Source of the DNA: Auanema rhodensis
Lineage: Eukaryota > Animalia > Nematoda
Length of the DNA stretch: 64,000 bases
Direction of reading: 5' to 3'
Assembly: GCA_964057225.1 (NCBI GenBank)
Contig: OZ059900.1
Coordinates: 23,374,001 to 23,438,000 of the forward strand
Position numbers and translations under genes: made by a program. Below the pieces are notes generated by a model. The model was not told the origin of the DNA. It did not search any database and saw only the letters and a program-made list of their open reading frames with translations. Positions 3,425-45,900 of the stretch are shown here, piece by piece (the stretch's first letter is position 1; every line of letters begins with the position of its first letter).

Positions 3425-6400
3425 AGCTCAAAATTGTTCGTACAACGTCTAGTTCCACTTTCACGACAAAAAAAACAGGGGTTAGAAAATTAAGGAAATT
3501 AGCATATTCTGAGGGCACGCCCCTTATGGCTAATATTGATTAAATCGATTTTTGTTCATATGAGTCGTCAAATGCAACGAATTTCAGCGTGTTACATACT
3601 AAAATGAAGCATTTTACATGCTGAACACTAGAAAAATACAAAAACACAGTATTTCCCATGAGAAATATTTTATTATGCTGGAAAACCAGTTTTTGGAAAT
3701 TTCGCTGTAAACAAGGTTTTGACTTACGATTTCATGTGTTCAAACTCATGCAATGTCAATGAAACCTAGCTCAAAACTGTTCGTACAACGTCTAGTTCCA
3801 CTTTCACGACAAAAAAACAGGGGTTAGAAAATTAAGGAAATTAGCATATTCTGAGGGCACGCCCCTTATGGCTAATATTGATTAAATCGATTTTTGTTCA
3901 TATGAGTCGTCAAATGCAACGAATTTCAGCGTGTTACATACTAAAATGAAGCATTTTACATGCTGAACACTAGAAAAATACAAAAACACAGTATTTCCCA
4001 TGAGAAATATTTTATTATGCTGGAAAACCAGTTTTTGGAAATTTCGCTGTAAACAAGGTTTTGACTTACGATTTCATGTGTTCAAACTCATGCAATGTCA
4101 ATGAAACCTAGCTCAAAATTGTTCGTACAACGTCTAGTTCCACTTTCACGACAAAAAAACAGGGGTTAGAAAATTAAGGAAATTAGCATATTCTGAGGGC
4201 ACGCCCCTTATGGCTAATATTGATTAAATCGATTTTTGTTCATATGAGTCGTCAAATGCAACGAATTTCAGCGTGTTACATACTAAAATGAAGCATTTTA
4301 CATGCTGAACACTAGAAAAATACAAAAACACAGTATTTCCCACGAGAAATATTTTATTATGCTGGAAAACCAGTTTTTGGAAATTTCGCTGTAAACAAGG
4401 TTTTGACTTACGATTTCATGTGTTCAAACTCATGCAATGTCAATGAAACCTAGCTCAAAATTGTTCGTACAACGTCTAGTTCCACTTTCACGACAAAAAA
4501 ACAGGGGTTAGAAAATTAAGGAAATTAGCATATTCTGAGGGCACGCCCCTTATCGCTAATATTGATTAAATCGATTTTTGTTCATATGAGTCGTCAAATG
4601 CAACGAATTTCAGCGTGTTACATACTAAAATGAAGCATTTTACATGCTGAACACTAGAAAAATACAAAAACACAGTATTTCCCACGAGAAATATTTTATT
4701 ATGCTGGAAAACCAGTTTTTGGAAATTTCGCTGTAAACAAGGTTTTGACTTACGATTTCATGTGTTCAAACTCATGCAATGTCAATGAAACCTAGCTCAA
4801 AATTGTTCGTACAACGTCTAGTTCCACTTTCACGACAAAAAAACAGGGGTTAGAAAATTAAGGAAATTAGCATATTCTGAGGGCACGCCCCTTATGGCTA
4901 ATATTGATTAAATCGATTTTTGTTCATATGAGTCGTCAAATGCAACGAATTTCAGCGTGTTACATACTAAAATGAAGCATTTTACATGCTGAACACTAGA
5001 AAAATACAAAAACACAGTATTTCCCACGAGAAATATTTTATTATGCTGGAAAACCAGTTTTTGGAAATTTCGCTGTAAACAAGGTTTTGACTTACGATTT
5101 CATGTGTTCAAACTCATGCAATGTCAATGAAACCTAGCTCAAAATTGTTCGTACAACGTCTAGTTCCACTTTCACGACAAAAAAACAGGGGTTAGAAAAT
5201 TAAGGAAATTAGCATATTCTGAGGGCACGCCCCTTATGGCTAATATTGATTAAATCGATTTTTGTTCATATGAGTCGTCAAATGCAACGAATTTCAGCGT
5301 GTTACATACTAAAATGAAGCATTTTACATGCTGAACACCAGAAAAATACAAAAACACAGTATTTCCCATGAGAAATATTTTATTATGCTGGAAAACCAGT
5401 TTTTGGAAATTTCGCTGTAAACAAGGCTTTGACTTACGATTTCATGTGTTCAAACTCATGCAATGTCAATGAAACCTAGCTCAAAATTGTTCGTACAACG
5501 TCTAGTTCCACTTTCACGACAAAAAAAACAGGGGTTAGAAAATTAAGGAAATTAGCATATTCTGAGGGCACGCCCCTTATGGCTAATATTGATTAAATCG
5601 ATTTTTGTTCATATGAGTCGTCAAATGCAACGAATTTCAGCGTGTTACATACTAAAATGAAGCATTTTACATGCTGAACACCAGAAAAATACAAAAACAC
5701 AGTATTTCCCATGAGAAATATTTTATTATGCTGGAAAACCAGTTTTTGGAAATTTCGCTGTAAACAAGGCTTTGACTTACGATTTCATGTGTTCAAACTC
5801 ATGCAATGTCAATGAAACCTAGCTCAAAATTGTTCGTACAACGTCTAGTTCCACTTTCACGACAAAAAAAACAGGGGTTAGAAAATTAAGGAAATTAGCA
5901 TATTCTGAGGGCACGCCCCTTATGGCTAATATTGATTAAATCGATTTTTGTTCATATGAGTCGTCAAATGCAACGAATTTCAGCGTGTTACATACTAAAA
6001 TGAAGCATTTTACATGCTGAACACTAGAAAAATACAAAAACACAGTATTTCCCATGAGAAATATTTTATTATGCTGGAAAACCAGTTTTTGGAAATTTCG
6101 CTGTAAACAAGGTTTTGACTTACGATTTCATGTGTTCAAACTCATGCAATGTCAATGAAACCTAGCTCAAAACTGTTCGTACAACGTCTAGTTCCACTTT
6201 CACGACAAAAAAACAGGGGTTAGAAAATTAAGGAAATTAGCATATTCTGAGGGCACGCCCCTTATGGCTAATATTGATTAAATCGATTTTTGTTCATATG
6301 AGTCGTCAAATGCAACGAATTTCAGCGTGTTACATACTAAAATGAAGCATTTTACATGCTGAACACTAGAAAAATACAAAAACACAGTATTTCCCATGAG

Positions 6401-9400
6401 AAATATTTTATTATGCTGGAAAACCAGTTTTTGGAAATTTCGCTGTAAACAAGGTTTTGACTTACGATTTCATGTGTTCAAACTCATGCAATGTCAATGA
6501 AACCTAGCTCAAAATTGTTCGTACAACGTCTAGTTCCACTTTCACGACAAAAAAACAGGGGTTAGAAAATTAAGGAAATTAGCATATTCTGAGGGCACGC
6601 CCCTTATGGCTAATATTGATTAAATCGATTTTTGTTCATATGAGTCGTCAAATGCAACGAATTTCAGCGTGTTACATACTAAAATGAAGCATTTTACATG
6701 CTGAACACTAGAAAAATACAAAAACACAGTATTTCCCACGAGAAATATTTTATTATGCTGGAAAACCAGTTTTTGGAAATTTCGCTGTAAACAAGGTTTT
6801 GACTTACGATTTCATGTGTTCAAACTCATGCAATGTCAATGAAACCTAGCTCAAAATTGTTCGTACAACGTCTAGTTCCACTTTCACGACAAAAAAACAG
6901 GGGTTAGAAAATTAAGGAAATTAGCATATTCTGAGGGCACGCCCCTTATCGCTAATATTGATTAAATCGATTTTTGTTCATATGAGTCGTCAAATGCAAC
7001 GAATTTCAGCGTGTTACATACTAAAATGAAGCATTTTACATGCTGAACACTAGAAAAATACAAAAACACAGTATTTCCCACGAGAAATATTTTATTATGC
7101 TGGAAAACCAGTTTTTGGAAATTTCGCTGTAAACAAGGTTTTGACTTACGATTTCATGTGTTCAAACTCATGCAATGTCAATGAAACCTAGCTCAAAATT
7201 GTTCGTACAACGTCTAGTTCCACTTTCACGACAAAAAAACAGGGGTTAGAAAATTAAGGAAATTAGCATATTCTGAGGGCACGCCCCTTATGGCTAATAT
7301 TGATTAAATCGATTTTTGTTCATATGAGTCGTCAAATGCAACGAATTTCAGCGTGTTACATACTAAAATGAAGCATTTTACATGCTGAACACCAGAAAAA
7401 TACAAAAACACAGTATTTCCCATGAGAAATATTTTATTATGCTGGAAAACCAGTTTTTGGAAATTTCGCTGTAAACAAGGTTTTGACTTACGATTTCATG
7501 TGTTCAAACTCATGCAATGTCAATGAAACCTAGCTCAAAATTGTTCGTACAACGTCTAGTTCCACTTTCACGACAAAAAAAACAGGGGTTAGAAAATTAA
7601 GGAAATTAGCATATTCTGAGGGCACGCCCCTTATGGCTAATATTGATTAAATCGATTTTTGTTCATATGAGTCGTCAAATGCAACGAATTTCAGCGTGTT
7701 ACATACTAAAATGAAGCATTTTACATGCTGAACACCAGAAAAATACAAAAACACAGTATTTCCCATGAGAAATATTTTATTATGCTGGAAAACCAGTTTT
7801 TGGAAATTTCGCTGTAAACAAGGCTTTGACTTACGATTTCATGTGTTCAAACTCATGCAATGTCAATGAAACCTAGCTCAAAATTGTTCGTACAACGTCT
7901 AGTTCCACTTTCACGACAAAAAAAACAGGGGTTAGAAAATTAAGGAAATTAGCATATTCTGAGGGCACGCCCCTTATGGCTAATATTGATTAAATCGATT
8001 TTTGTTCATATGAGTCGTCAAATGCAACGAATTTCAGCGTGTTACATACTAAAATGAAGCATTTTACATGCTGAACACTAGAAAAATACAAAAACACAGT
8101 ATTTCCCATGAGAAATATTTTATTATGCTGGAAAACCAGTTTTTGGAAATTTCGCTGTAAACAAGGTTTTGACTTACGATTTCATGTGTTCAAACTCATG
8201 CAATGTCAATGAAACCTAGCTCAAAACTGTTCGTACAACGTCTAGTTCCACTTTCACGACAAAAAAACAGGGGTTAGAAAATTAAGGAAATTAGCATATT
8301 CTGAGGGCACGCCCCTTATGGCTAATATTGATTAAATCGATTTTTGTTCATATGAGTCGTCAAATGCAACGAATTTCAGCGTGTTACATACTAAAATGAA
8401 GCATTTTACATGCTGAACACTAGAAAAATACAAAAACACAGTATTTCCCATGAGAAATATTTTATTATGCTGGAAAACCAGTTTTTGGAAATTTCGCTGT
8501 AAACAAGGTTTTGACTTACGATTTCATGTGTTCAAACTCATGCAATGTCAATGAAACCTAGCTCAAAATTGTTCGTACAACGTCTAGTTCCACTTTCACG
8601 ACAAAAAAACAGGGGTTAGAAAATTAAGGAAATTAGCATATTCTGAGGGCACGCCCCTTATGGCTAATATTGATTAAATCGATTTTTGTTCATATGAGTC
8701 GTCAAATGCAACGAATTTCAGCGTGTTACATACTAAAATGAAGCATTTTACATGCTGAACACTAGAAAAATACAAAAACACAGTATTTCCCACGAGAAAT
8801 ATTTTATTATGCTGGAAAACCAGTTTTTGGAAATTTCGCTGTAAACAAGGTTTTGACTTACGATTTCATGTGTTCAAACTCATGCAATGTCAATGAAACC
8901 TAGCTCAAAATTGTTCGTACAACGTCTAGTTCCACTTTCACGACAAAAAAACAGGGGTTAGAAAATTAAGGAAATTAGCATATTCTGAGGGCACGCCCCT
9001 TATCGCTAATATTGATTAAATCGATTTTTGTTCATATGAGTCGTCAAATGCAACGAATTTCAGCGTGTTACATACTAAAATGAAGCATTTTACATGCTGA
9101 ACACTAGAAAAATACAAAAACACAGTATTTCCCACGAGAAATATTTTATTATGCTGGAAAACCAGTTTTTGGAAATTTCGCTGTAAACAAGGTTTTGACT
9201 TACGATTTCATGTGTTCAAACTCATGCAATGTCAATGAAACCTAGCTCAAAATTGTTCGTACAACGTCTAGTTCCACTTTCACGACAAAAAAACAGGGGT
9301 TAGAAAATTAAGGAAATTAGCATATTCTGAGGGCACGCCCCTTATGGCTAATATTGATTAAATCGATTTTTGTTCATATGAGTCGTCAAATGCAACGAAT

Positions 9401-9585
9401 TTCAGCGTGTTACATACTAAAATGAAGCATTTTACATGCTGAACACCAGAAAAATACAAAAACACAGTATTTCCCATGAGAAATATTTTATTATGCTGGA
9501 AAACCAGTTTTTGGAAATTTCGCTGTAAACAAGGTTTTGACTTACGATTTCATGTGTTCAAACTCTTGCAATGTCAATGAAACCT
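3425..9585 (+). repeat. Imperfect 6-7-mer higher-order repeat, about 3 copies
   Basis: The marker TTATCGCT (G>C) is at 4554, 6950 and 9004 (spacings 2396 and 2054). Each occurrence is preceded by the same monomer order: A8, AAAACTG, CCCACG. Confidence 0.85.
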
Positions 9586-23300: not shown

Positions 23301-25370
23301 CTTTCACGACAAAAAAACAGGGGTTAGAAAATTAAGGAAATTAGCATATTCTGAGGGCACGCCCCTTATGGCTAATATTGATTAAATCGATTTTTGTTCA
23401 TATGAGTCGTCAAATGCAACGAATTTCAGCGTGTTACATACTAAAATGAAGCATTTTACATGCTGAACACTAGAAAAATACAAAAACACAGTATTTCCCA
23501 TGAGAAATATTTTATTATGCTGGAAAACCAGTTTTTGGAAATTTCGCAGTAAACAAGGTTTTGACTTACGATTTCATGTGTTCAAACTCATGCAATGTCA
23601 ATGAAACCTAGCTCAAAATTGTTCGTACAACGTCTAGTTCCACTTTCACGACAAAAAAACAGGGGTTAGAAAATTAAGGAAATTAGCATATTCTGAGGGC
23701 ACGCCCCTTATGGCTAATATTGATTAAATCGATTTTTGTTCATATGAGTCGTCAAATGCAACGAATTTCAGCGTGTTACATACTAAAATGAAGCATTTTA
23801 CATGCTGAACACTGGAAAAATACAAAAACACAGTATTTCCCATGAGAAATATTTTATTATGCTGGAAAACCAGTTTTTGGAAATTTCGCTGTAAACAAGG
23901 TTTTGACTTACGATTTCATGTGTTCAAACTCATGCAATGTCAACGAAACCTAGCTCAAAATTGTTCGTACAACGTCTAGTTCCACTTTCACGACAAAAAA
24001 ACAGGGGTTAGAAAATTAAGGAAATTAGCATATTCTGAGGGCACGCCCCTTATGGCTAATATTGATTAAATCGATTTTTGTTCATATGAGTCGTCAAATG
24101 CAACGAATTTCAGCGTGTTACATACTAAAATGAAGCATTTTACATGCTGAACACTGGAAAAATACAAAAACACAGTATTTCCCATGAGAAATATTTTATT
24201 ATGCTGGAAAACCAGTTTTTGGAAATTTCGCTGTAAACAAGGTTTTGACTTACGATTTCATGTGTTCAAACTCATGCAATGTCAACGAAACCTAGCTCAA
24301 AATTGTTCGTACAACGTCTAGTTCTACTTTCACGACAAAAAAACAGGGGTTAGAAAATTAAGGAAATTAGCATATTCTGAGGGCACGCCCCTTAAGGCTA
24401 ATATTGATTAAATCGATTTTTGTTCATATGAGTCGTCAAATGCAACGAATTTCAGCGTGTTACATACTAAAATGAAGCATTTTACATGCTGAACACTAGA
24501 AAAATACAAAAACACAGTATTTCCCATGAGAAATATTTTATTATGCTGGAAAACCAGTTTTTGGAAATTTCGCTGTAAACAAGGTTTTGACTTACGATTT
24601 CATGTGTTCAAACTCATGCAATGTCAATGAAACCTAGCTTAAAATTGTTCGTACAACGTCTAGTTCCACTTTCACGACAAAAAAACAGGGGTTAGAAAAT
24701 TAAGGAAATTAGCATATTCTGAGGGCACGCCCCTTATGGCTAATATTGATTAAATCGACTTTTGTTCATATGAGTCGTCAAATGCAACGAATTTCAGCGT
24801 GTTACATACTAAAATGAAGCATTTTACATGCTGAACACTGAAAAAATACAAAAACACAGTATTTCCCATGAGAAATATTTTATTATGCTGGAAAACCAGT
24901 TTTTGGAAATTTCGCTGTAAACAAGGTTTTGACTTACGATTTCATGTGTTCAAACTCATGCAATGTCAACGAAACCTAGCTCAAAATTGTTCGTACAACG
25001 TCTAGTTCCACTTTCACGACAAAAAAACAGGGGTTAGAAAATTAAGGAAATTAGCATATTCTGAGGGCACGCCCCTTATGGCTAATATTGATTAAATCGA
25101 TTTTTGTTCATATGAGTCGTCAAATGCAACGAATTTCAGCGTGTTACATACTAAAATGAAGCATTTTACATGCTGAACACTAGAAAAATACAAAAACACA
25201 GTATTTCCCACGAGAAATATTTTATTATGCTGGAAAACCAGTTTTTGGAAATTTCGCTGTAAACAAGGTTTTGACTTACGATTTCATGTGTTCAAACTCA
25301 TGCAATGTCAATGAAACCTAGCTCAAAATTGTTCGTACAACGTCTAGTTCCACTTTCACGACAAAAAAAC

Positions 25371-25426
25371 AGGGGTTAGGGGCGTGCCCTCAGAATATGC
25401 TAATTTCCTTAATTTTCTAACCCCTG
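25371..25426. other. Inversion (strand-switch) junction of the satellite array
   Basis: Forward ...ACAAAAAAACAGGGGTTAG joins directly to reverse AGGGGCGTGCCCTCAGAATATG.... The AG at 25378-25379 is shared by both orientations and no foreign sequence is inserted. Confidence 0.98.
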
Positions 25427-26443
25427 TTTTTTTGTCGTGAAAGTGGAACTAGACGTTGTACGAACAATTTTGAGCTAGGTTTCGTTGACATTGCATGAGT
25501 TTGAACACATGAAATCGTAAGTCAAAACCTTGTTTACAGCGAAATTTCCAAAAACTGGTTTTCCAGCATAATAAAATATTTCTCATGGGAAATACTGTGT
25601 TTTTGTATTTTTTCAGTGTTCAGCATGTAAAATGCTTCATTTTAGTATGTAACACGCTGAAATTCGTTGCATTTGACGACTCATATGAACAAAAGTCGAT
25701 TTAATCAATATTAGCCATAAGGGGCGTGCCCTCAGAATATGCTAATTTCCTTAATTTTCTAACCCCTGTTTTTTTGTCGTGAAAGTGGAACTAGACGTTG
25801 TACGAACAATTTTAAGCTAGGTTTCATTGACATTGCATGAGTTTGAACACATGAAATCGTAAGTCAAAACCTTGTTTACAGCGAAATTTCCAAAAACTGG
25901 TTTTCCAGCATAATAAAATATTTCTCATGGGAAATACTGTGTTTTTGTATTTTTCTAGTGTTCAGCATGTAAAATGCTTCATTTTAGTATGTAACACGCT
26001 GAAATTCGTTGCATTTGACGACTCATATGAACAAAAATCGATTTAATCAATATTAGCCTTAAGGGGCGTGCCCTCAGAATATGCTAATTTCCTTAATTTT
26101 CTAACCCCTGTTTTTTTGTCGTGAAAGTGGAACTAGACGTTGTACGAACAATTTTGAGCTAGGTTTCATTGACATTGCATGAGTTTGAACACATGAAATC
26201 GTAAGTCAAAACCTTGTTTACAGCGAAATTTCCAAAAACTGGTTTTCCAGCATAATAAAATATTTCTCATGGGAAATACTGTGTTTTTGTATTTTTCTAG
26301 TGTTCAGCATGTAAAATGCTTCATTTTAGTATGTAACAAGCTGAAATTCGCTGCATTTGACGACTCATATGAACAAAAATCGATTTAATCAATATTAGCC
26401 ATAAGGGGCGTGCCCTCAGAATATGCTAATTTCCTTAATTTTC

Positions 26444-26475
26444 TAACCCCTGTTTTTTTTAACCCCTGTTTTTTT
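26444..26475 (-). repeat. 16-bp tandem duplication inside a monomer (TAACCCCTGTTTTTTT x2), giving a 358-bp monomer
   Basis: Units lie at 26444-26459 and 26460-26475; the monomer spacing 26161 to 26519 is 358 bp. Confidence 0.97.
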
Positions 26476-29195
26476 GTCGTGAAAGTGGAACTAGACGTTG
26501 TACGAACAATTTTGAACTAGGTTTCATTAACATTGCATGAGTTTGAACACATGAAATCGTAAGTCAAAACCTTGTTTACAGCGAAATTTCCAAAAACTGG
26601 TTTTCCAGCATAATAAAATATTTCTCATGGGAAATACTGTGTTTTTGTATTTTTCTAGTGTTCAGCATGTAAAATGCTTCATTTTAGTATGTAACACGCT
26701 GAAATTCGTTGCATTTGACGACTCATATGAACAAAAATCGATTTAATCAATATTAGCCATAAGGGGCGTGCCCTCAGAATATGCTAATTTCCTTAATTTT
26801 CTAACCCCTGTTTTTTTGTCGTGAAAGTGGAACTAGACGTTGTACGAACAATTTTGAGCTAGGTTTCATTGACATTGCATGAGTTTGAACACATGAAATC
26901 GTAAGTCAAAACCTTGTTTACAGCGAAATTTCCAAAAACTGGTTTTCCAGCATAATAAAATATTTCTCGTGGGAAATACTGTGTTTTTGTATTTTTCTAG
27001 TGTTCAGCATGTAAAATGCTTCATTTTAGTATGTAACACGCTGAAATTCGTTGCATTTGACGACTCATATGAACAAAAATCGATTTAATCAATATTAGCC
27101 ATAAGGGGCGTGCCCTCAGAATATGCTAATTTCCTTAATTTTCTAACCCCTGTTTTTTTGTCGTGAAAGTGGAACTAGACGTTGTACGAACAATTTTGAG
27201 CTAGGTTTCATTGACATTGCATGAGTTTGAACACATGAAATCGTAAGTCAAAACCTTGTTCACAGCGAAATTTCCTAAAACTGGTTTTCCAGCATAATAA
27301 AATATTTCTCGTGGGAAATACTGTGTTTTTGTATTTTTCTAGTGTTCAGCATGTAAAATGCTTCATTTTAGTATGTAACACGCTGAAATTCGTTGCATTT
27401 GACGACTCATATGAACAAAAATCGATTTAATCAATATTAGCCATAAGGGGCGTGCCCTCAGAATATGCTAATTTCCTTAATTTTCTAACCCCTGTTTTTT
27501 TGTCGTGAAAGTGGAACTAGACGTTGTACGAACAATTTTGAACTAGGTTTCATTGACATTGCATGAGTTTGAACACATGAAATCGTAAGTCAAAACCTTG
27601 TTTACAGCGAAATTTCCTAAAACTGGTTTTCCAGCATAATAAAATATTTCTAATGGGAAATACTGTGTTTTTGTATTTTTCTAGTGTTCAGCATGTAAAA
27701 TGCTTCATTTTAGTATGTAACACGCTGAAATTCGTTGCATTTGACGACTCATATGAACAAAAATCGATTTAATCAATATTAGCCATAAGGGGCGTGCCCT
27801 CAGAATATGCTAATTTCCTTAATTTTCTAACCCCTGTTTTTTTGTCGTGAAAGTGGAACTGGACGTTGTACGAACAATTTTGAGCTAGGTTTCATTGACA
27901 TTGCATGAGTTTGAACACATGAAATCGTAAGTCAAAACCTTGTTTACAGCGAAATTTCCAAAAACTGGTTTTCCAGCATAATAAAATATTTCTCGTGGGA
28001 AATACTGTGTTTTTGTATTTTTCTAGTGTTCAGCATGTAAAATGCTTCATTTTAGTATGTAACACGCTGAAATTCGTTGCATTTGACGACTCATATGAAC
28101 AAAAATCGATTTAATCAATATTAGCCATAAGGGGCGTGCCCTCAGAATATGCTAATTTCCTTAATTTTCTAACCCCTGTTTTTTTGTCGTGAAAGTGGAA
28201 CTAGACGTTGTACGAACAATTTTGAACTAGGTTTCATTGACATTGCATGAGTTTGAACACATGAAATCGTAAGTCAAAACCTTGTTCACAGCGAAATTTC
28301 CTAAAACTGGTTTTCCAGCATAATAAAATATTTCTCGTGGGAAATACTGTGTTTTTGTATTTTTCTAGTGTTCAGCATGTAAAATGCTTCATTTTAGTAT
28401 GTAACACGCTGAAATTCGTTGCATTTGACGACTCATATGAACAAAAATCGATTTAATCAATATTAGCCATAAGGGGCGTGCCCTCAGAATATGCTAATTT
28501 CCTTAATTTTCTAACCCCTGTTTTTTTGTCGTGAAAGTGGAACTAGACGTTGTACGAACAATTTTGAACTAGGTTTCATTGACATTGCATGAGTTTGAAC
28601 ACATGAAATCGTAAGTCAAAACCTTGTTTACAGCGAAATTTCCTAAAACTGGTTTTCCAGCATAATAAAATATTTCTCATGGGAAATACTGTGTTTTTGT
28701 ATTTTTCTAGTGTTCAGCATGTAAAATGCTTCATTTTAGTATGTAACACGCTGAAATTCGTTGCATTTGACGACTCATATGAACAAAAATCGATTTAATC
28801 AATATTAGCCATAAGGGGCGTGCCCTCAGAATATGCTAATTTCCTTAATTTTCTAACCCCTGTTTTTTTGTCGTGAAAGTGGAACTAGACGTTGTACGAA
28901 CAATTTTGAGCTAGGTTTCGTTGACATTGCATGAGTTTGAACACATGAAATCGTAAGTCAAAACCTTGTTTACAGCGAAATTTCCAAAAACTGGTTTTCC
29001 AGCATAATAAAATATTTCTCATGGGAAATACTGTGTTTTTGTATTTTTCTAGTGTTCAGCATGTAAAATGCTTCATTTTAGTATGTAACAAGCTGAAATT
29101 CGCTGCATTTGACGACTCATATGAACAAAAATCGATTTAATCAATATTAGCCATAAGGGGCGTGCCCTCAGAATATGCTAATTTCCTTAATTTTC

Positions 29196-29227
29196 TAACC
29201 CCTGTTTTTTTTAACCCCTGTTTTTTT
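29196..29227 (-). repeat. Second copy of the same 16-bp intra-monomer duplication
   Basis: Units lie at 29196-29211 and 29212-29227, 2752 bp (8x342+16) from the first copy, with the same linked SNPs (AACAAGCTG, TTCGCTGCA). Confidence 0.97.
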
Positions 29228-32200: not shown

Positions 32201-33359
32201 ATTTGACGACTCATATGAACAAAAATCGATTTAATCAATATTAGCCATAAGGGGCGTGCCCTCAGAATATGCTAATTTCCTTAATTTTCTAACCCCTGTT
32301 TTTTTGTCGTGAAAGTGGAACTAGACGTTGTACGAACAATTTTGAACTAGGTTTCATTGACATTGCATGAGTTTGAACACATGAAATCGTAAGTCAAAAC
32401 CTTGTTTACAGCGAAATTTCCAAAAACTGGTTTTCCAGCATAATAAAATATTTCTCATGGGAAATACTGTGTTTTTGTATTTTTCTAGTGTTCAGCATGT
32501 AAAATGCTTCATTTTAGTATGTAACACGCTGAAATTCGTTGCATTTGACGACTCATATGAACAAAAATCGATTTAATCAATATTAGCCATAAGGGGCGTG
32601 CCCTCAGAATATGCTAATTTCCTTAATTTTCTAACCCCTGTTTTTTTGTCGTGAAAGTGGAACTAGACGTTGTACGAACAATTTTAAGCTAGGTTTCATT
32701 GACATTGCATGAGTTTGAACACATGAAATCGTAAGTCAAAACCTTGTTTACAGCGAAATTTCCAAAAACTGGTTTTCCTGCATAATAAATCATTTCTCGT
32801 GGGAAATACTGTGTTTTTGTCTTTTTCTAGTGTTCAGCATGTAAAATGCTTCATTTTAGTATGTAACACGCTGGAATTCGTTGCATTTGACGACTCATAT
32901 GAACAAAAATCGATTTAATCAATATTAGCCATAAGGGGCGTGCCCTCAGAATATGCTAATTTCCTTAATTTTCTAACCCCTGTTTTTTTGTCGTGAAAGT
33001 GGAACTAGACGTTGTACGAACAATTTTGAACTAGGTTTCATTGACATTGCATGAGTTTGAACACATGAAATCGTAAGTCAAAACCTTGTTTACAGCGAAA
33101 TTTCCAAAAACTGGTTTTCCAGCATAATAAAATATTTCTAATGGGAAATACTGTGTTTTTGTATTTTTCTAGTGTTCAGCATGTAAAATGCTTCATTTTA
33201 GTATGTAACACGCTGAAATTCGTTGCATTTGACGACTCATATGAACAAAAATCGATTTAATCAATATTAGCCATAAGGGGCGTGCCCTCAGAATATGCTA
33301 ATTTCCTTAATTTTCTAACCCCTGTTTTTTTGTCGTGAAAGTGGAACTAGACGTTGTAC

Positions 33360-36300
33360 GAACAATTTTAAACTAGGTTTCATTGACATTGCATGAGTTT
33401 GAACACATGAAATCGTAAGTCAAAACCTTGTTTACAGCGAAATTTCCAAAAACTGATTTTCCAGCATAATAAAATATTTCTCATGGGAAATACTGTGTTT
33501 TTGTGTTTTTCTAGTGTTCAGCATGTAAAATGCTTTATTTTAGTATGTAACACGCTGGAATTCGTTGCATTTGACGACTTATATGAACAAAAATCGATTT
33601 AATCAATATTAGCCATAAGGGGCGTGCCCTCAGAATATGCTAATTTCCTTAATTTTCTAACCCCTGTTTTTTTGTCGTGAAAGTGGAACTAGACGTTGTA
33701 CGAACAATTTTGAACTAGGTTTCATTGACATTGCATGAGTTTGAACACATGAAATCGTAAGTCAAAACCTTGTTTACAGCGAAATTTCCAAAAACTGGTT
33801 TTCCAGCATAATAAAATATTTCTAATGGGAAATACTGTGTTTTTGTATTTTTCTAGTGTTCAGCATGTAAAATGCTTCATTTTAGTATGTAACACGCTGA
33901 AATTCGTTGCATTTGACGACTCATATGAACAAAAATCGATTTAATCAATATTAGCCATAAGGGGCGTGCCCTCAGAATATGCTAATTTCCTTAATTTTCT
34001 AACCCCTGTTTTTTTGTCGTGAAAGTGGAACTAGACGTTGTACGAACAATTTTGAACTAGGTTTCATTGACATTGCATGAGTTTGAACACATGAAATCGT
34101 AAGTCAAAACCTTGTTTACAGCGAAATTTCCAAAAACTGATTTTCCAGCATAATAAAATATTTCTCATGGGAAATACTGTGTTTTTGTGTTTTTCTAGTG
34201 TTCAGCATATAAAATGCTTCATTTTAGTATGTAACACGCTGAAATTCGTTGCATTTGACGACTCATATGAACAAAAATCGATTTAATCAATATTAGCCAT
34301 AAGGGGCGTGCCCTCAGAATATGCTAATTTCCTTAATTTTCTAACCCCTGTTTTTTTGTCGTGAAAGTGGAACTAGACGTTGTACGAACAATTTTGAGCT
34401 AGGTTTCATTGACATTGCATGAGTTTGAACACATGAAATCGTAAGTCAAAACCTTGTTTACAGCGAAATTTCCAAAAACTGGTTTTCCAGCATAATAAAA
34501 TATTTCTCATGGGAAATACTGTGTTTTTGTATTTTTCTAGTGTTCAGCATGTAAAATGCTTCATTTTAGTATGTAACACGCTGAAATTCGTTGCATTTGA
34601 CGACTCATATGAACAAAAATCGATTTAATCAATATTAGCCATAAGGGGCGTGCCCTCAGAATATGCTAATTTCCCTAATTTTCTAACCCCTGTTTTTTTG
34701 TCGTGAAAGTGGAACTAGACGTTGTACGAACAATTTTGAGCTAGGTTTCATTGACATTGCATGAGTTTGAACACATGAAATCGTAAGTCAAAACCTTGTT
34801 TACAGCGAAATTTCCAAAAACTGGTTTTCCAGCATAATGAAATATTTCTCATGGGAAATACTGTGTTTTTGTATTTTTCTAGTGTTCAGCATGTAAAATG
34901 CTTCATTTTAGTATGTAACACGCTGAAATTCGTTGCATTTGACGACTCATATGAACAAAAATCGATTTAATCAATATTAGCCATAAGGGGCGTGCCCTCA
35001 GAATATGCTAATTTCCTTAATTTTCTAACCCCTGTTTTTTTGTCGTGAAAGTGGAACTAGACGTTGTACGAACAATTTTAAACTAGGTTTCATTGACATT
35101 GCATGAGTTTGAACACATGAAATCGTAAGTCAAAACCTTGTTTACAGCGAAATTTCCAAAAACTGATTTTCCAGCATAATAAAATATTTCTCATGGGAAA
35201 TACTGTGTTTTTGTGTTTTTCTAGTGTTCAGCATGTAAAATGCTTTATTTTAGTATGTAACACGCTGGAATTCGTTGCATTTGACGACTTATATGAACAA
35301 AAATCGATTTAATCAATATTAGCCATAAGGGGCGTGCCCTCAGAATATGCTAATTTCCTTAATTTTCTAACCCCTGTTTTTTTGTCGTGAAAGTGGAACT
35401 AGACGTTGTACGAACAATTTTGAACTAGGTTTCATTGACATTGCATGAGTTTGAACACATGAAATCGTAAGTCAAAACCTTGTTTACAGCGAAATTTCCA
35501 AAAACTGGTTTTCCAGCATAATAAAATATTTCTAATGGGAAATACTGTGTTTTTGTATTTTTCTAGTGTTCAGCATGTAAAATGCTTCATTTTAGTATGT
35601 AACACGCTGAAATTCGTTGCATTTGACGACTCATATGAACAAAAATCGATTTAATCAATATTAGCCATAAGGGGCGTGCCCTCAGAATATGCTAATTTCC
35701 TTAATTTTCTAACCCCTGTTTTTTTGTCGTGAAAGTGGAACTAGACGTTGTACGAACAATTTTGAACTAGGTTTCATTGACATTGCATGAGTTTGAACAC
35801 ATGAAATCGTAAGTCAAAACCTTGTTTACAGCGAAATTTCCAAAAACTGATTTTCCAGCATAATAAAATATTTCTCATGGGAAATACTGTGTTTTTGTGT
35901 TTTTCTAGTGTTCAGCATATAAAATGCTTCATTTTAGTATGTAACACGCTGAAATTCGTTGCATTTGACGACTCATATGAACAAAAATCGATTTAATCAA
36001 TATTAGCCATAAGGGGCGTGCCCTCAGAATATGCTAATTTCCTTAATTTTCTAACCCCTGTTTTTTTGTCGTGAAAGTGGAACTAGACGTTGTACGAACA
36101 ATTTTGAGCTAGGTTTCATTGACATTGCATGAGTTTGAACACATGAAATCGTAAGTCAAAACCTTGTTTACAGCGAAATTTCCAAAAACTGGTTTTCCAG
36201 CATAATAAAATATTTCTCATGGGAAATACTGTGTTTTTGTATTTTTCTAGTGTTCAGCATGTAAAATGCTTCATTTTAGTATGTAACACGCTGAAATTCG

Positions 36301-36780
36301 TTGCATTTGACGACTCATATGAACAAAAATCGATTTAATCAATATTAGCCATAAGGGGCGTGCCCTCAGAATATGCTAATTTCCCTAATTTTCTAACCCC
36401 TGTTTTTTTGTCGTGAAAGTGGAACTAGACGTTGTACGAACAATTTTGAGCTAGGTTTCATTGACATTGCATGAGTTTGAACACATGAAATCGTAAGTCA
36501 AAACCTTGTTTACAGCGAAATTTCCAAAAACTGGTTTTCCAGCATAATGAAATATTTCTCATGGGAAATACTGTGTTTTTGTATTTTTCTAGTGTTCAGC
36601 ATGTAAAATGCTTCATTTTAGTATGTAACACGCTGAAATTCGTTGCATTTGACGACTCATATGAACAAAAATCGATTTAATCAATATTAGCCATAAGGGG
36701 CGTGCCCTCAGAATATGCTAATTTCCTTAATTTTCTAACCCCTGTTTTTTTGTTGTGAAAGTGGAACTAGACGTTGTACG
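33360..36780 (-). repeat. 5-mer block duplication (1710-bp period)
   Basis: Paired private variants are 1710 bp apart: 33370/35080, 33580/35290, 34209/35919, 34675/36385 and 34839/36549. Confidence 0.92.
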
Positions 36781-38162
36781 AACAATTTTGAACTAGGTTT
36801 CATTGACATTGCATGAGTTTGAACACATGAAATCGTAAGTCAAAACCTTGTTTACAGCGAAATTTCCAAAAACTGGTTTTCCAGCATAATAAAATATTTC
36901 TCATGGGAAATACTGTGTTTTTGTATTTTTCTAGTGTTCAGCATGTAAAATGCTGCATTTTAGTATGTAACACGCTGAAATTCGTTGCATTTGACGACTC
37001 ATATGAACAAAAATCGATTTAATCAATATTAGCCATAAGGGGCGTGCCCTCAGAATATGCTAATTTCCTTAATTTTCTAATCCCTGTTTTTTTGTCGTGA
37101 AAGTGGAACTAGACGTTGTACGAACAATTTTGAGCTAGGTTTCATTGACATTGCATGAGTTTGAACACATGAAATCATAAGTCAAAACCTTGTTTACAGC
37201 GAAATTTCCAAAAACTGGTTTTCCAGCATAATAAAATATTTCTCATAAAAAATACTGTGTTTTTGTATTTTTCTAGGGTTCAGCATGTAAAATGCTTCAT
37301 TTTAGTATGTAACACGCTGAAATTCGTTGCATTTGACGACTCATATGAACAAAAATCGATTTAATCAATATTAGCCATAAGGGGCGTGCCCTCAGAATAT
37401 GCTAATTTCCTTAATTTTCTAACCCCTGTTTTTTTGTCGTGAAAGTGGAACTAGACATTGTACGAACAATTTTGAACTAGGTTTTATTGACATTGCATGA
37501 GTTTGAACACATGAAATCGTAAGTCAAAACCTTGTTTACAGCGAAATTTCCAAAAACTGGTTTTCCAGCATAATAAAATATTTCTAATGGGAAATACTGT
37601 GTTTTTGTATTTTTCTAGTGTTCAGCATGTAAAATGCTTCATTTTAGTATGTAACACGCTGAAATTCGTTGCATTTGACGACTCATATGAACAAAAATCG
37701 ATTTAATCAATATTAGCCATAAGGGGCGTGCCCTCAGAATATGCTAATTTCCTTAATTTTCTAACCCCTGTTTTTTTGTCGTGAAAGTGGAACTAGACGT
37801 TGTACGAACAATTTTGAACTAGGTTTCATTGACATTGCATGAGTTTGAACACATGAAATCGTAAGTCAAAACCTTGTTTACAGCGAAATTTCCAAAAACT
37901 GGTTTTCCAGCATAATAAAATATTTCTCATGGGAAATACTGTGTTTTTGTATTTTTCTAGTGTTCAGCATGTAAAATGTTTCATTTTAGTATGTAACACG
38001 CTGAAATTCGTTGCATTTGACGACTCATATGAACAAAAATCGATTTAATCAATATTAGCCATAAGGGGCGTGCCCTCAGAATATGCTAATTTCCTTAATT
38101 TTCTAACCCCTGTTTTTTTGTCGTGAAAGTGGAACTAGACGTTGTACGAACAATTTTGAGCT

Positions 38163-41100
38163 AGGTTTCATTGACATTGCATGAGTTTGAACACATGAAA
38201 TCGTAAGTCAAAACCTTGTTTACAGCGAAATTTCCAAAAACTGGTTTTCCAGCATAATAAAATATTTCTCGTGGGAAATACTGTGTTTTTGTATTTTTCT
38301 AGTGTTCAGCATGTAAAATGCTTCATTTTAGTATGTAACACGCTGAAATTCGTTGCATTTGACGACTCATATGAACAAAAATCGATTTAATCAATATTAG
38401 CCATAAGGGGCGTGCTCTCAGAATATGCTAATTTCCTTAATTTTCTAACCCCTGTTTTTTTGTCGTGAAAGTGGAACTAGACGTTGTACGAACAATTTTG
38501 AACTAGGTTTCATTGACATTGCATGAGTTTGAACACATGAAATCGTAAGTCAAAACCTTGTTTACAGCGAAATTTCCAAAAACTGGTTTTCCAGCATAAT
38601 AAAATATTTCTCGTGGGAAATACTGTGTTTTTGTATTTTTCTAGTGTTCAGCATGTAAAATGCTTCATTTTAGTATGTAACACGCTGAAATTCGTTGCAT
38701 TTGACGACTCATATGAACAAAAATCGATTTAATCAATATTAGCCATAAGGGGCGTGCCCTCAGAATATGCTAATTTCCTTAATTTTCTAACCCCTGTTTT
38801 TTTGTCGTGAAAGTGGAACTAGACGTTGTACGAACAATTTTGAGCTAGGTTTCATTGACATTGCATGAGTTTGAACACATGAAATCGTAAGTCAAAACCT
38901 TGTTTACAGCGAAATTTCCAAAAACTGGTTTTCCAGCATAATAAAATATTTCTCGTGGGAAATACTGTGTTTTTGTATTTTTCTAGTGTTCAGCATGTAA
39001 AATGCATCATTTTAGTATGTAACACGCTGAAATTCGTTGCATTTGACGACTCATATGAACAAAAATCGATTTAATCAATATTAGCCATAAGGGGCGTGCC
39101 CTCAGAATATGCTAATTTCCTTAATTTTCTAACCCCTGTTTTTTTGTCGTGAAAGTGGAACTAGACGTTGTACGAACAATTTTGAACTAGGTTTCATTGA
39201 CATTGCATGAGTTTGAACACATGAAATCGTAAGTCAAAACCTTGTTTACAGCGAAATTTCCTAAAACTGGTTTTCCAGCATAATAAAATATTTCTAATGG
39301 GAAATACTGTGTTTTTGTATTTTTCTAGTGTTCAGCATGTAAAATGCTTCATTTTAGTATGTAACACGCTGAAATTCGTTGCATTTGACGACTCATATGA
39401 ACAAAAATCGATTTAATCAATATTAGCCATAAGGGGCGTGCCCTCAGAATATGCTAATTTCCTTAATTTTCTAACCCCTGTTTTTTTGTCGTGAAAGTGG
39501 AACTAGACGTTGTACGAACAATTTTGAGCTAGGTTTCATTGACATTGCATGAGTTTGAACACATGAAATCGTAAGTCAAAACCTTGTTTACAGCGAAATT
39601 TCCAAAAACTGGTTTTCCAGCATAATAAAATATTTCTCGTGGGAAATACTGTGTTTTTGTATTTTTCTAGTGTTCAGCATGTGAAATGCTTCATTTTAGT
39701 ATGTAACACGCTGAAATTCGTTGCATTTGACGACTCATATGAACAAAAATCGATTTAATCAATATTAGCCATAAGGGGCGTGCCCTCAGAATATGCTAAT
39801 TTCCTTAATTTTCTAACCCCTGTTTTTTTGTCGTGAAAGTGGAACTAGACGTTGTACGAACAATTTTGAACTAGGTTTCATTGACATTGCATGAGTTTGA
39901 ACACATGAAATCGTAAGTCAAAACCTTGTTTACAGCGAAATTTCCAAAAACTGGTTTTCCAGCATAATAAAATATTTCTAATGGGAAATACTGTGTTTTT
40001 GTATTTTTCTAGTGTTCAGCATGTAAAATGATTCATTTTAGTATGTAACACGCTGAAATTCGTTGCATTTGACGACTCATATGAACAAAAATCGATTTAA
40101 TCAATATTCGCCATAAGGGGCGTGCCCTCAGAATATGCTAATTTCCTTAATTTTCTAACCCCTGTTTTTTTGTCGTGAAAGTGGAACTAGACGTTGTACG
40201 AACAATTTTGAACTAGGTTTCATTGACATTGCATGAGTTTGAACACATGAAATCGTAAGTCAAAACCTTGTTTACAGCGAAATTTCCAAAAACTGGTTTT
40301 CCAGCATAATAAAATATTTCTCATGGGAAATACTGTGTTTTTGTATTTTTCTAGTGTTCAGCATGTAAAATGCTTCATTTTAGTATGTAACACGCTGAAA
40401 TTCGTTGCATTTGACGACTCATATGAACAAAAATCGATTTAATCAATATTAGCCATAAGGGGCGTGCCCTCAGAATATGCTAATTTCCTTAATTTTCTAA
40501 CCCCTGTTTTTTTGTCGTGAAAGTGGAACTAGACGTTGTACGAACAATTTTGAGCTAGGTTTCATTGACATTGCATGAGTTTGAACACATGAAATCGTAA
40601 GTCAAAACCTTGTTTACAGCGAAATTTCCAAAAACTGGTTTTCCAGCATAATAAAATATTTCTCGTGGGAAATACTGTGTTTTTGTATTTTTCTAGTGTT
40701 CAGCATGTAAAATGCTTCATTTTAGTATGTAACACGCTGAAATTCGTTGCATTTGACGACTCATATGAACAAAAATCGATTTAATCAATATTAGCCATAA
40801 GGGGCGTGCTCTCAGAATATGCTAATTTCCTTAATTTTCTAACCCCTGTTTTTTTGTCGTGAAAGTGGAACTAGACGTTGTACGAACAATTTTGAACTAG
40901 GTTTCATTGACATTGCATGAGTTTGAACACATGAAATCGTAAGTCAAAACCTTGTTTACAGCGAAATTTCCAAAAACTGGTTTTCCAGCATAATAAAATA
41001 TTTCTCGTGGGAAATACTGTGTTTTTGTATTTTTCTAGTGTTCAGCATGTAAAATGCTTCATTTTAGTATGTAACACGCTGAAATTCGTTGCATTTGACG

Positions 41101-42950
41101 ACTCATATGAACAAAAATCGATTTAATCAATATTAGCCATAAGGGGCGTGCCCTCAGAATATGCTAATTTCCTTAATTTTCTAACCCCTGTTTTTTTGTC
41201 GTGAAAGTGGAACTAGACGTTGTACGAACAATTTTGAGCTAGGTTTCATTGACATTGCATGAGTTTGAACACATGAAATCGTAAGTCAAAACCTTGTTTA
41301 CAGCGAAATTTCCAAAAACTGGTTTTCCAGCATAATAAAATATTTCTCGTGGGAAATACTGTGTTTTTGTATTTTTCTAGTGTTCAGCATGTAAAATGCA
41401 TCATTTTAGTATGTAACACGCTGAAATTCGTTGCATTTGACGACTCATATGAACAAAAATCGATTTAATCAATATTAGCCATAAGGGGCGTGCCCTCAGA
41501 ATATGCTAATTTCCTTAATTTTCTAACCCCTGTTTTTTTGTCGTGAAAGTGGAACTAGACGTTGTACGAACAATTTTGAACTAGGTTTCATTGACATTGC
41601 ATGAGTTTGAACACATGAAATCGTAAGTCAAAACCTTGTTTACAGCGAAATTTCCTAAAACTGGTTTTCCAGCATAATAAAATATTTCTAATGGGAAATA
41701 CTGTGTTTTTGTATTTTTCTAGTGTTCAGCATGTAAAATGCTTCATTTTAGTATGTAACACGCTGAAATTCGTTGCATTTGACGACTCATATGAACAAAA
41801 ATCGATTTAATCAATATTAGCCATAAGGGGCGTGCCCTCAGAATATGCTAATTTCCTTAATTTTCTAACCCCTGTTTTTTTGTCGTGAAAGTGGAACTAG
41901 ACGTTGTACGAACAATTTTGAGCTAGGTTTCATTGACATTGCATGAGTTTGAACACATGAAATCGTAAGTCAAAACCTTGTTTACAGCGAAATTTCCAAA
42001 AACTGGTTTTCCAGCATAATAAAATATTTCTCGTGGGAAATACTGTGTTTTTGTATTTTTCTAGTGTTCAGCATGTGAAATGCTTCATTTTAGTATGTAA
42101 CACGCTGAAATTCGTTGCATTTGACGACTCATATGAACAAAAATCGATTTAATCAATATTAGCCATAAGGGGCGTGCCCTCAGAATATGCTAATTTCCTT
42201 AATTTTCTAACCCCTGTTTTTTTGTCGTGAAAGTGGAACTAGACGTTGTACGAACAATTTTGAACTAGGTTTCATTGACATTGCATGAGTTTGAACACAT
42301 GAAATCGTAAGTCAAAACCTTGTTTACAGCGAAATTTCCAAAAACTGGTTTTCCAGCATAATAAAATATTTCTAATGGGAAATACTGTGTTTTTGTATTT
42401 TTCTAGTGTTCAGCATGTAAAATGATTCATTTTAGTATGTAACACGCTGAAATTCGTTGCATTTGACGACTCATATGAACAAAAATCGATTTAATCAATA
42501 TTCGCCATAAGGGGCGTGCCCTCAGAATATGCTAATTTCCTTAATTTTCTAACCCCTGTTTTTTTGTCGTGAAAGTGGAACTAGACGTTGTACGAACAAT
42601 TTTGAACTAGGTTTCATTGACATTGCATGAGTTTGAACACATGAAATCGTAAGTCAAAACCTTGTTTACAGCGAAATTTCCAAAAACTGGTTTTCCAGCA
42701 TAATAAAATATTTCTCATGGGAAATACTGTGTTTTTGTATTTTTCTAGTGTTCAGCATGTAAAATGCTTCATTTTAGTATGTAACACGCTGAAATTCGTT
42801 GCATTTGACGACTCATATGAACAAAAATCGATTTAATCAATATTAGCCATAAGGGGCGTGCCCTCAGAATATGCTAATTTCCTTAATTTTCTAACCCCTG
42901 TTTTTTTGTCGTGAAAGTGGAACTAGACGTTGTACGAACAATTTTGAGCT
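38163..42950 (-). repeat. 7-mer block duplication (2394-bp period)
   Basis: Paired private variants are 2394 bp apart: 38416/40810, 39006/41400, 39683/42077, 40031/42425 and 40109/42503. Confidence 0.93.
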
Positions 42951-45900
42951 AGGTTTCATTGACATTGCATGAGTTTGAACACATGAAATCGTAAGTCAAA
43001 ACCTTGTTTACAGCGAAATTTCCAAAAACTGGTTTTCCTGCATAATAAAATATTTCTCGTGGGAAATACTGTGTTTTTGTACTTTTCTAGTGTTCAGCAT
43101 GTAAAATGCTTCATTTTAGTATGTAACACGCTGGAATTCGTTGCATTTGACGACTCATATGAACAAAAATCGATTTAATCAATATTAGCCATAAGGGGCG
43201 TGCCCTCAGAATATGCTAATTTCCTTAATTTTCTAACCCCTGTTTTTTTGTCGTGAAAGTGGAACTAGACGTTGTACGAACAATTTTGAACTAGGTTTCA
43301 TTGACATTGCATGAGTTTGAACACATGAAATCGTAAGTCAAAACCTTGTTTACAGCGAAATTTCCAAAAACTGGTTTTCCAGCATAATAAAATATTTCTA
43401 ATGGGAAATACTGTGTTTTTGTATTTTTCTAGTGTTCAGCATGTAAAATGCTTCATTTTAGTATGTAACACGCTGAAATTCGTTGCATTTGACGACTCAT
43501 ATGAACAAAAATCGATTTAATCAATATTAGCCATAAGGGGCGTGCCCTCAGAATATGCTAATTTCCTTAATTTTCTAACCCCTGTTTTTTTGTCGTGAAA
43601 GTGGAACTAGACGTTGTACGAACAATTTTGAGCTAGGTTTCATTGACATTGCATGAGTTTGAACACATGAAATCGTAAGTCAAAACCTTGTTTACAGCGA
43701 AATTTCCAAAAACTGGTTTTCCAGCATAATAAAATATTTCTCGTGGGAAATACTGTGTTTTTGTATTTTTCTAGTGTTCAGCATGTAAAATGCTTCATTT
43801 TAGTATGTAACACGCTGAAATTCGTTGCATTTGACGACTCATATGAACAAAAATCGATTTAATCAATATTAGCCATAAGGGGCGTGCCCTCAGAATATGC
43901 TAATTTCCTTAATTTTCTAACCCCTGTTTTTTTGTCGTGAAAGTGGAACTAGACGTTGTACGAACAATTTTGAGCTAGGTTTCATTGACATTGCATGAGT
44001 TTGAACACATGAAATCGTAAGTCAAAACCTTGTTTACAGCGAAATTTCCTAAAACTGGTTTTCCAGCATAATAAAATATTTCTAATGGGAAATACTGTGT
44101 TTTTGTATTTTTCTAGTGTTCAGCATGTAAAATGCTTCATTTTAGTATGTAACACGCTGAAATTCGTTGCATTTGACGACTCATATGAACAAAAATCGAT
44201 TTAATCAATATTCGCCATAAGGGGCGTGCCCTCAGAATATGCTAATTTCCTTAATTTTCTAACCCCTGTTTTTTTGTCGTGAAAGTGGAACTAGACGTTG
44301 TACGAACAATTTTGAACTAGGTTTCATTGACATTGCATGAGTTTGAACACATGAAATCGTAAGTCAAAACCTTGTTTACAGCGAAATTTCCAAAAACTGG
44401 TTTTCCAGCATAATAAAATATTTCTCATGGGAAATACTGTGTTTTTGTATTTTTCTAGTGTTCAGCATGTAAAATGCTTCATTTTAGTATGTAACACGCT
44501 GAAATTCGTTGCATTTGACGACTCATATGAACAAAAATCGATTTAATCAATATTAGCCATAAGGGGCGTGCCCTCAGAATATGCTAATTTCCTTAATTTT
44601 CTAACCCCTGTTTTTTTGTCGTGAAAGTGGAACTAGACGTTGTACGAACAATTTTGAGCTAGGTTTCATTGACATTGCATGAGTTTGAACACATGAAATC
44701 GTAAGTCAAAACCTTGTTTACAGCGAAATTTCCAAAAACTGGTTTTCCTGCATAATAAAATATTTCTCGTGGGAAATACTGTGTTTTTGTATTTTTCTAG
44801 TGTTCAGCATGTAAAATGCTTCATTTTAGTATGTAACACGCTGGAATTCGTTGCATTTGACGACTCATATGAACAAAAATCGATTTAATCAATATTAGCC
44901 ATAAGGGGCGTGCCCTCAGAATATGCTAATTTCCTTAATTTTCTAACCCCTGTTTTTTTGTCGTGAAAGTGGAACTAGACGTTGTACGAACAATTTTGAA
45001 CTAGGTTTCATTGACATTGCATGAGTTTGAACACATGAAATCGTAAGTCAAAACCTTGTTTACAGCGAAATTTCCAAAAACTGGTTTTCCAGCATAATAA
45101 AATATTTCTAATGGGAAATACTGTGTTTTTGTATTTTTCTAGTGTTCAGCATGTAAAATGCTTCATTTTAGTATGTAACACGCTGAAATTCGTTGCATTT
45201 GACGACTCATATGAACAAAAATCGATTTAATCAATATTCGCCATAAGGGGCGTGCCCTCAGAATATGCTAATTTCCTTAATTTTCTAACCCCTGTTTTTT
45301 TGTCGTGAAAGTGGAACTAGACGTTGTACGAACAATTTTGAACTAGGTTTCATTGACATTGCATGAGTTTGAACACATGAAATCGTAAGTCAAAACCTTG
45401 TTTACAGCGAAATTTCCAAAAACTGGTTTTCCAGCATAATAAAATATTTCTCATGGGAAATACTGTGTTTTTGTATTTTTCTAGTGTTCAGCATGTAAAA
45501 TGCTTCATTTTAGTATGTAACACGCTGAAATTCGTTGCATTTGACGACTCATATGAACAAAAATCGATTTAATCAATATTAGCCATAAGGGGCGTGCCCT
45601 CAGAATATGCTAATTTCCTTAATTTTCTAACCCCTGTTTTTTTGTCGTGAAAGTGGAACTAGACGTTGTACGAACAATTTTGAGCTAGGTTTCATTGACA
45701 TTGCATGAGTTTGAACACATGAAATCGTAAGTCAAAACCTTGTTTACAGCGAAATTTCCAAAAACTGGTTTTCCTGCATAATAAAATATTTCTCGTGGGA
45801 AATACTGTGTTTTTGTATTTTTCTAGTGTTCAGCATGTAAAATGCTTCATTTTAGTATGTAACACGCTGGAATTCGTTGCATTTGACGACTCATATGAAC

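Follow-up and report, generated by a model that had tools for sequence, protein, structure and literature searches.

Background

Many complete assemblies now show strand switches within satellite and centromeric arrays, and because the sequence on either side of them is uniform their origin can rarely be read. Here we describe one such switch in the nematode Auanema rhodensis, within a stretch of 64,000 nucleotides (contig OZ059900.1, positions 23,374,001 to 23,438,000; "the window" below, with coordinates counted from its first letter). Two oppositely oriented arrays of a 342-bp satellite meet there, and the first 0.75 kb of one of them is an exact inverted copy of nearby sequence in the other.

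Among described satellites, those of Tribolium show macro-dyad symmetries, with subarrays in opposite orientation (PMC13081366). The inversion sites of T. madens consist of diverged subunits that have been kept in thousands of copies, and for one Tribolium inversion type the authors suggest ectopic recombination between similar subunits (PMC13081366). The A. rhodensis array resembles these macro-dyads in having opposite multi-kb subarrays of one satellite, with hairpin or cruciform potential, and differs from them in its clean microhomology junction and fresh mirrored tract. The number 342 does not occur in the Tribolium paper (PMC13081366). A literature search on "342 bp" satellites and on six consensus fragments returned nothing relevant.

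The rearrangement itself has better-studied relatives. Priming of a fold-back at microhomology is well established (PMC3907307, PMC11724301), both for fold-back duplications, which include constitutional inverted duplications in humans (PMC3907307), and for the fold-back templated insertions made at yeast breaks, where they measure 5-34 bp (PMC11724301). The present locus shares with fold-back inverted duplications two inverted arms from one local sequence (here 749 nt exact, with six shared variants), a single-copy spacer contiguous with the donor arm (here 301 nt, in left-arm phase) and one novel junction with zero to a few nucleotides of microhomology, the polarity being readable from the flanks. 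Fold-back inversions also arise in breakage-fusion-bridge cycles. Unlike in the classical inverted duplication with deletion, the mirror here stops at 26059-26129 and gives way, in phase, to a different array, with neither a run to the chromosome end nor a paired terminal deletion; and unlike known fold-backs the locus lies inside a homogeneous satellite, so that the second join would be guided by homology and leave no visible scar.

Template switching between leading and lagging strands during replication is likewise established, in origin-dependent inverted-repeat amplification (ODIRA; PMC10766183) and in iterative switches of the microhomology-mediated break-induced replication (MMBIR) type (PMC11293582). 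As in these, a nascent 3' end would here have switched to a complementary strand a few hundred nucleotides away, and then switched a second time. ODIRA, however, needs pre-existing short inverted repeats and yields inverted triplications, whereas here the homology is 2 nt and no triplication is visible.

Large palindromes, for example on sex chromosomes, undergo gene conversion between their arms. The locus is like them in having an identical stretch between inverted arms beside a spacer, and unlike them in that identity is limited to 0.75 kb and lies one monomer off register, the rest of the arms belonging to different lineages. Overall, the locus adds a single case to a familiar class of rearrangement, read from assembly sequence alone, in a setting where base-level records are scarce.

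Results and Discussion

The satellite array and its orientation switch

The window is a single 342-bp satellite array over all 64 kb, with about 34% G+C. Tandem Repeats Finder (TRF) reports a forward array at 1-25379 and the reverse complement of the unit over 25378-64000, and the sign of both AT and GC skew flips at the orientation switch. The subarrays measure 25.4 kb and 38.6 kb, and both run off the ends of the window, so that these are minimum lengths. We cut monomers at the CAGGGGTTAG motif, numbered them outward from the junction (L1 and R1 being the nearest on the left and right) and aligned the 186 of them (74 left, 112 right) with MAFFT; variants are named below by monomer site. The features at and around the switch are as follows:

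1 to 25379, forward strand: left subarray of the 342-bp satellite, 74 full monomers, ending ...CAGGGGTTAG (TRF, monomer cutting)
25380 to 64000, reverse strand: right subarray, the inverted 342-bp satellite, 112 full monomers plus a 47-nt partial monomer at the junction (TRF, skew change, monomer cutting)
24326 to 25076, forward strand: donor (template) arm, made up of the last 18 nt of L4, L3 (24344-24685), L2 (24686-25027) and the first 47-49 nt of L1
25077 to 25377, forward strand: uncopied spacer ("loop") of 301 nt, in phase with the left arm, most of L1
25378 to 25379, no strand: 2-nt microhomology AG, which ends GGGGTTAG and is complementary to CT at 25075-25076
25380 to 26128, reverse strand: copied arm, made up of the 47-nt partial monomer, R1 (= L2), R2 (= L3) and 18 nt of R3
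26060 to 26128, no strand: outer-end zone of the templated tract, an in-phase join containing the CAGGGGTTAG motif at 26101-26110

The left arm finishes ...CAGGGGTTAG at 25379 and the right arm opens GGGCGTGCCC at 25380. This join, TTAG/GGGC (TTAG/GGGCGTG), is the sole out-of-phase one, and its 23-mer is unique in the window.

An exact mirrored tract, one monomer out of register

When positions p and q are paired so that p+q = 50454, right-arm positions 25380-26128 match the reverse complement of 25074-24326 without a mismatch over 749 nt (751 nt if the 2-nt AG/CT microhomology is counted), and the first mismatches fall at 26129 and 26168, followed by 26298, 26339 and 26351. The symmetric register 50796, which corresponds to a 37-nt spacer, has 11 mismatches in the first 750 nt; this and five further-back registers that cover the whole stretch have 5-11 mismatches each, mainly at 25484, 25613/25614, 25695, 25814 and 26059. 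The repeat finder agrees, in that the arms of its top inverted pair end at 25076 and begin at 25378, with 301 nt between them.

These results bear out most of what a first-pass annotation, made from the letters of the window, had proposed: that mirrored positions sum to 50454 and not to 50796 (0 against 11 mismatches over about 750 nt), that the mirror is shifted by one monomer and leaves 25077-25377 uncopied, that the template starts at the CCCCT ending at 25076 (where the AG/CT microhomology lies), and that the mirror fails at 26129 and 26168 after some 680-750 nt, the first mismatches being at exactly those positions. Markers are shared as far as 26059/24395 and first disagree at 26129/24325, and the tract is therefore 680-749 nt long, its outer end falling in a marker-free zone of 69 nt.

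An exact inverted match of 749 nt is not in itself exceptional, ranking only 6th in the window, where runs of consensus monomers reach 1,125 nt inverted. Match length was for this reason dropped as a test statistic in favour of variant haplotypes, and it is on the variants that the case for fold-back rests.

Shared variants as markers

The mirrored non-consensus pairs are 24395/26059, 24640/25814, 24759/25695, 24840-41/25614-13 and 24970/25484; all five had been listed in the first-pass annotation as left-arm variants recurring as complements on the right, and all were verified in the alignment. In terms of monomers, L2 (24686-25027) and R1 (25768-25427) both carry 89C, 170G, 171A and 300C, and L3 (24344-24685) and R2 (26110-25769) both carry 67A and 312T. 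Three of these six variants, 67A, 89C and 171A, occur in two of the 186 monomers each, solely in the mirrored pairs, while the frequencies of 170G, 312T and 300C in the window are 4, 5 and 6 of 186, respectively. The description of these variants as rare or private thus holds for the first three within the window, and is undercut for 170G+171A by its apparent presence in other samples (see below).

Splitting the array and building a variant matrix, as had been suggested, showed L2 to be identical to R1 and L3 to R2. Among 8,288 left by right comparisons these are the only identical pairs with two or more non-consensus sites (four variants in the first, two in the second), and they are adjacent, in mirror order and abutting the junction (permutation P about 9e-5).

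Donor polarity and separate ancestry of the arms

L4 and L5, neighbours of L2 on the left, have the same 170G+300C background as L2, whereas on the other side R3 resembles R11, and R6-R10 resemble R13-R17 (a right-arm duplication). With 170G+300C native to the left, R3 and the monomers beyond it native to the right, and a spacer that keeps left-arm phase, R1-R2 are the copy and the left arm the donor: copying ran from left to right. The same phase and background rule out the right arm as donor. The boundary of the tract is sharp: where copying ended, six features within a single monomer set L4 (170G, 300C, 339T) apart from R3 (a 16-bp insertion, 117G, 129T).

Beyond 26129 the repertoires of the two arms differ. 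Variant 310T is present in 46 right monomers and one left monomer; 200T (17 copies) and 234A (11 copies) are found only on the right and 169C and 257C only on the left, and two left-arm variants, 317C and an extra A at alignment column 358, have a single right copy each. Variants that the left arm lacks dominate the proximal right arm (R4-R19). The 38-kb inverted arm thus has an independent ancestry and was not copied from the left, and the templated part is a 0.75-kb patch joining two oppositely oriented arrays. In this respect the first-pass annotation, which saw here a record of how the satellite inversion formed, went too far: the record is of how the junction was made or remade, not of the origin of the inverted array.

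Proposed mechanism

With moderate confidence, based on the sequence features above, we consider a microhomology-primed fold-back or template switch, followed by homology capture, to be the best fit to the mirrored patch. A break or a stalled replication end in the forward array would leave a 3' end ...CAGGGGTTAG, which could anneal by 2 nt (AG with CT) to a site 301 nt upstream on its own strand. Extension by about 680-750 nt would then copy L1(1-47), L2 and L3 as their reverse complement. The new strand, by now satellite of the opposite orientation, would find full homology in an array already so oriented, either the other end of the break or another template, and could join it in monomer phase within 26060-26128. 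The outcome would be a 0.75-kb templated patch between oppositely oriented subarrays; a template switch within a replication fork would be an equivalent route leaving the same anatomy.

Five elements make up that anatomy. Adjacent sequence is copied in inverted form, a single-copy spacer separates copy and donor, the donor lies on the side of the spacer, there is one junction, with 2 nt of microhomology, and the exit from the copy is in phase and cannot be seen. Snap-back priming, which the first-pass annotation had put forward, is thus compatible with the register, spacer, microhomology, tract length and left-to-right polarity; the part that did not carry over is its extent, as only 0.75 kb is templated. 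Break, priming and homology-guided capture are what we infer from this anatomy, on the supposition that the junction is correctly assembled.

The array also contains exact direct duplications of several monomers:

37980 to 43040, 33141 to 36750 and 5428 to 9570, in both arms: exact direct multi-monomer duplications

They extend without a difference over 2,665 nt at offset 2394, 1,903 nt at offset 1710 and 2,084 nt at offset 2054, and indicate very recent local amplification in both arms. Given zero-difference direct copies of up to 2,665 nt, a zero-difference inverted copy fits the timescale of array turnover.

The staggered-break model of inversion, in which two copies lie at opposite ends of the inverted segment, was ruled out, as the copies here are 301 nt apart.

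Other features of the junction

The junction forms a telomere-repeat-like string, GGGGTTAGGGGC, at 25370-25383, in which the GGG comes from the template and the resemblance is probably a coincidence. Telomere healing at GGGGTTAG was ruled out, because the template accounts for the GGG that follows and there is no run of repeats. An Rfam match to the MIR173 precursor (25341-25455; 44.5 bits against a gathering threshold of 70) was judged spurious, the junction creating a short hairpin with a 37-nt loop that explains this sub-threshold hit. The Rfam search of the monomer for ribozymes or structured RNAs gave nothing above threshold.

Short-read contigs and sequence collections

The read data available for comparison are Logan short-read contigs, single-nucleotide polymorphism (SNP) bubble pieces of about 60 nt, most of which fit several places. 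Contigs from four runs were compared with 24200-26300, namely X1 and X2 (organism A, one study), X4 (another study) and X9 (organism C); their depths are means and not copy numbers. At 25613, contigs with the window's T (170G+171A) are present in X1, X4 and X9, beside those with the C variant (170G alone).

Independent runs also carry other inversion-type joints of the satellite. One joins 24433 to 25390, at a depth of 16,625 in X1 but of 8 in another sample, and a spacerless palindrome, TTCTGAG/CTCAGAA, joins 24380 to 25391. Such joints show that this satellite does, in general, switch orientation. The right-hand breaks of these joints lie about 10 nt from the junction of the window, at the other edge of the GGGCACGCCC dyad.

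Runs under eight organism labels (A-H) contain 28-95% of the sampled 31-mers, from which it appears that the satellite is common to several taxa or sample types and nearly unchanged among them. A scan of a metagenome collection gave no match either for the junction 23-mer or for a 31-nt consensus piece; with the satellite itself absent from that collection, the scan is uninformative about the junction.

Variants shared by the arms outside the tract

Monomer L8 (22634-22975) shares the rare pair 117G+129T with R3 (26111-26468) and R11 (28863-29220). The pair occurs nowhere else in the window, and 300C is also common to L8 and R11. This sharing suggests that sequence passed between the arms on another, earlier occasion; the monomers around L8 do not match those around R3 and R11. 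Among rare variants (2-7 copies), 16 of 50 occur in both arms, and sharing between arms is concentrated in L4-L26 and R3-R49. When the tract monomers are left out, 11 of the 16 keep a nearest carrier on both arms, and the positions of these carriers are in rough mirror collinearity (Spearman 0.70, p 0.018, for points that are not independent), a weak pattern compatible with older mirrored layers or with distance-dependent exchange.

A further small rearrangement lies just beyond the tract:

26444 to 26475, reverse strand: 16-bp tandem duplication (AAAAAAACAGGGGTTA twice) in R3, the first native right-arm monomer (TRF)

It recurs in R11, at about 29196-29227. Its boundary, after GGGGTTA, is within 1 nt of the inversion break after GGGGTTAG, and the coinciding breaks, of two events only, may mark a break-prone site.

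Alternative explanations

Several observations weigh against a fold-back origin of the patch. Its length of about 0.7 kb lies between the known cases, being far greater than that of the 5-34 bp fold-back insertions of yeast (PMC11724301) and far smaller than that of classical fold-back duplications, which reach the chromosome end. The junction 25379/25380 is bridged by none of the 32 short-read contigs listed (of about 33,700, some 60 nt each), which in itself speaks neither for the junction nor against it. In the same data the 170G+171A pair is seemingly present in other samples and in another labelled organism, so the mirrored haplotypes may be older, or commoner genome-wide, than the window indicates. 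The 312T of L3 and R2 is otherwise a right-arm variant. Finally, the 104 nt next to the junction (25380-25483) contain no marker, and for that reason the tract is not proven to start at the junction.

This last point bears on the possibility that the junction already existed and that the patch was made by gene conversion, or by homology-driven template switching, from arm to arm in an older dyad, at least 576 nt of the right arm (25484-26059) being later overwritten from the left in a pairing one monomer off. Such a tract need not reach the junction, and the sequence it left would be identical to that expected from fold-back; shifted pairing would be easy, all registers being about 99% alike; and both of its ends would be invisible in-phase switches, like the outer end that is observed. 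Template switching that homogenises the arms of inverted repeats is known (PMC8604942), and the rare variants common to both arms (L8 with R3 and R11; the rough mirror collinearity, rho 0.70) hint at repeated exchange. We nevertheless think this unlikely. Over at least 25 kb of paired arms there is just one such tract, and it sits within 105 nt of the junction, a position predicted by fold-back and not required by conversion, which makes conversion the less parsimonious account; moreover, perfect identity extends up to the junction, and conversion explains neither the origin of the junction nor its microhomology.

An error of sequencing or assembly is also doubtful, although it has to be taken seriously in a megabase satellite region, the part of a genome most prone to misassembly. 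A chimeric fold-back molecule or read, produced by snap-back synthesis in the library or by a missed adapter, might have bridged contigs of opposite orientation, or near-identical satellite might have been misjoined. The junction is unique in the window and, as said, bridged by none of the listed contigs, and the mirrored part is short, switching to native right-arm sequence within the marker-free 69-nt zone. A chimeric read would, however, mirror the left arm for its entire remaining length and have its true overlaps with the left arm, and accurate long-read assemblers are unlikely to bridge contigs through an overlap of at most 750 nt that is 99% identical. The exact multi-kb direct duplications resolved in the window argue for good read support, and the other inversion junctions of the satellite come from independent short-read runs.

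Alternatively, the whole dyad could be an old fold-back palindrome whose arms diverged by local amplification while its centre was repeatedly broken and re-copied, leaving nested layers of which R1-R2 = L2-L3 would be the youngest, and R3 and R11, with their resemblance to L8, an older one. The 117G+129T (and 300C) shared by L8 with R3 and R11, and the 16 of 50 rare variants present in both arms, with 11 of them in rough mirror collinearity, are what one would expect in such a case. Even so, we regard it as very improbable: the points are few and non-independent, several of the sites could be recurrent mutations, the neighbours of L8 do not match those of R3 and R11, and the variants that dominate R4-R19 are missing from the left arm.

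That common monomer variants merely happen to coincide on the two sides of the switch is effectively refuted within the window, for while consensus monomers do yield exact inverted matches of this length and some tract variants exist elsewhere in the genome, two adjacent multi-variant haplotypes stand in mirror order at the junction and three of their variants are seen nowhere else among the 186 monomers.

Significance

In this array rare variants act as natural barcodes, from which one can read the donor of a single event, its register and tract length, and the spacer and microhomology that it left. If reads confirm the junction and other switches share its signature, then fold-back in replication or repair, and not ectopic recombination, would be implicated as the source of dyads, and, if the fold-back reading is true, the events that switch the orientation of a satellite could be ordered in time. 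A broader and quite speculative extension is that orientation switches are made and remade by microhomology-primed fold-back at a fragile site of the monomer, near GGGGTTAG and the GGGCACGCCC dyad, so that macro-dyads would grow from their centres in nested mirrored layers. Were that so, it would provide a general mechanism, readable from sequence, for a dyad architecture that has so far been reported as peculiar to Tribolium.

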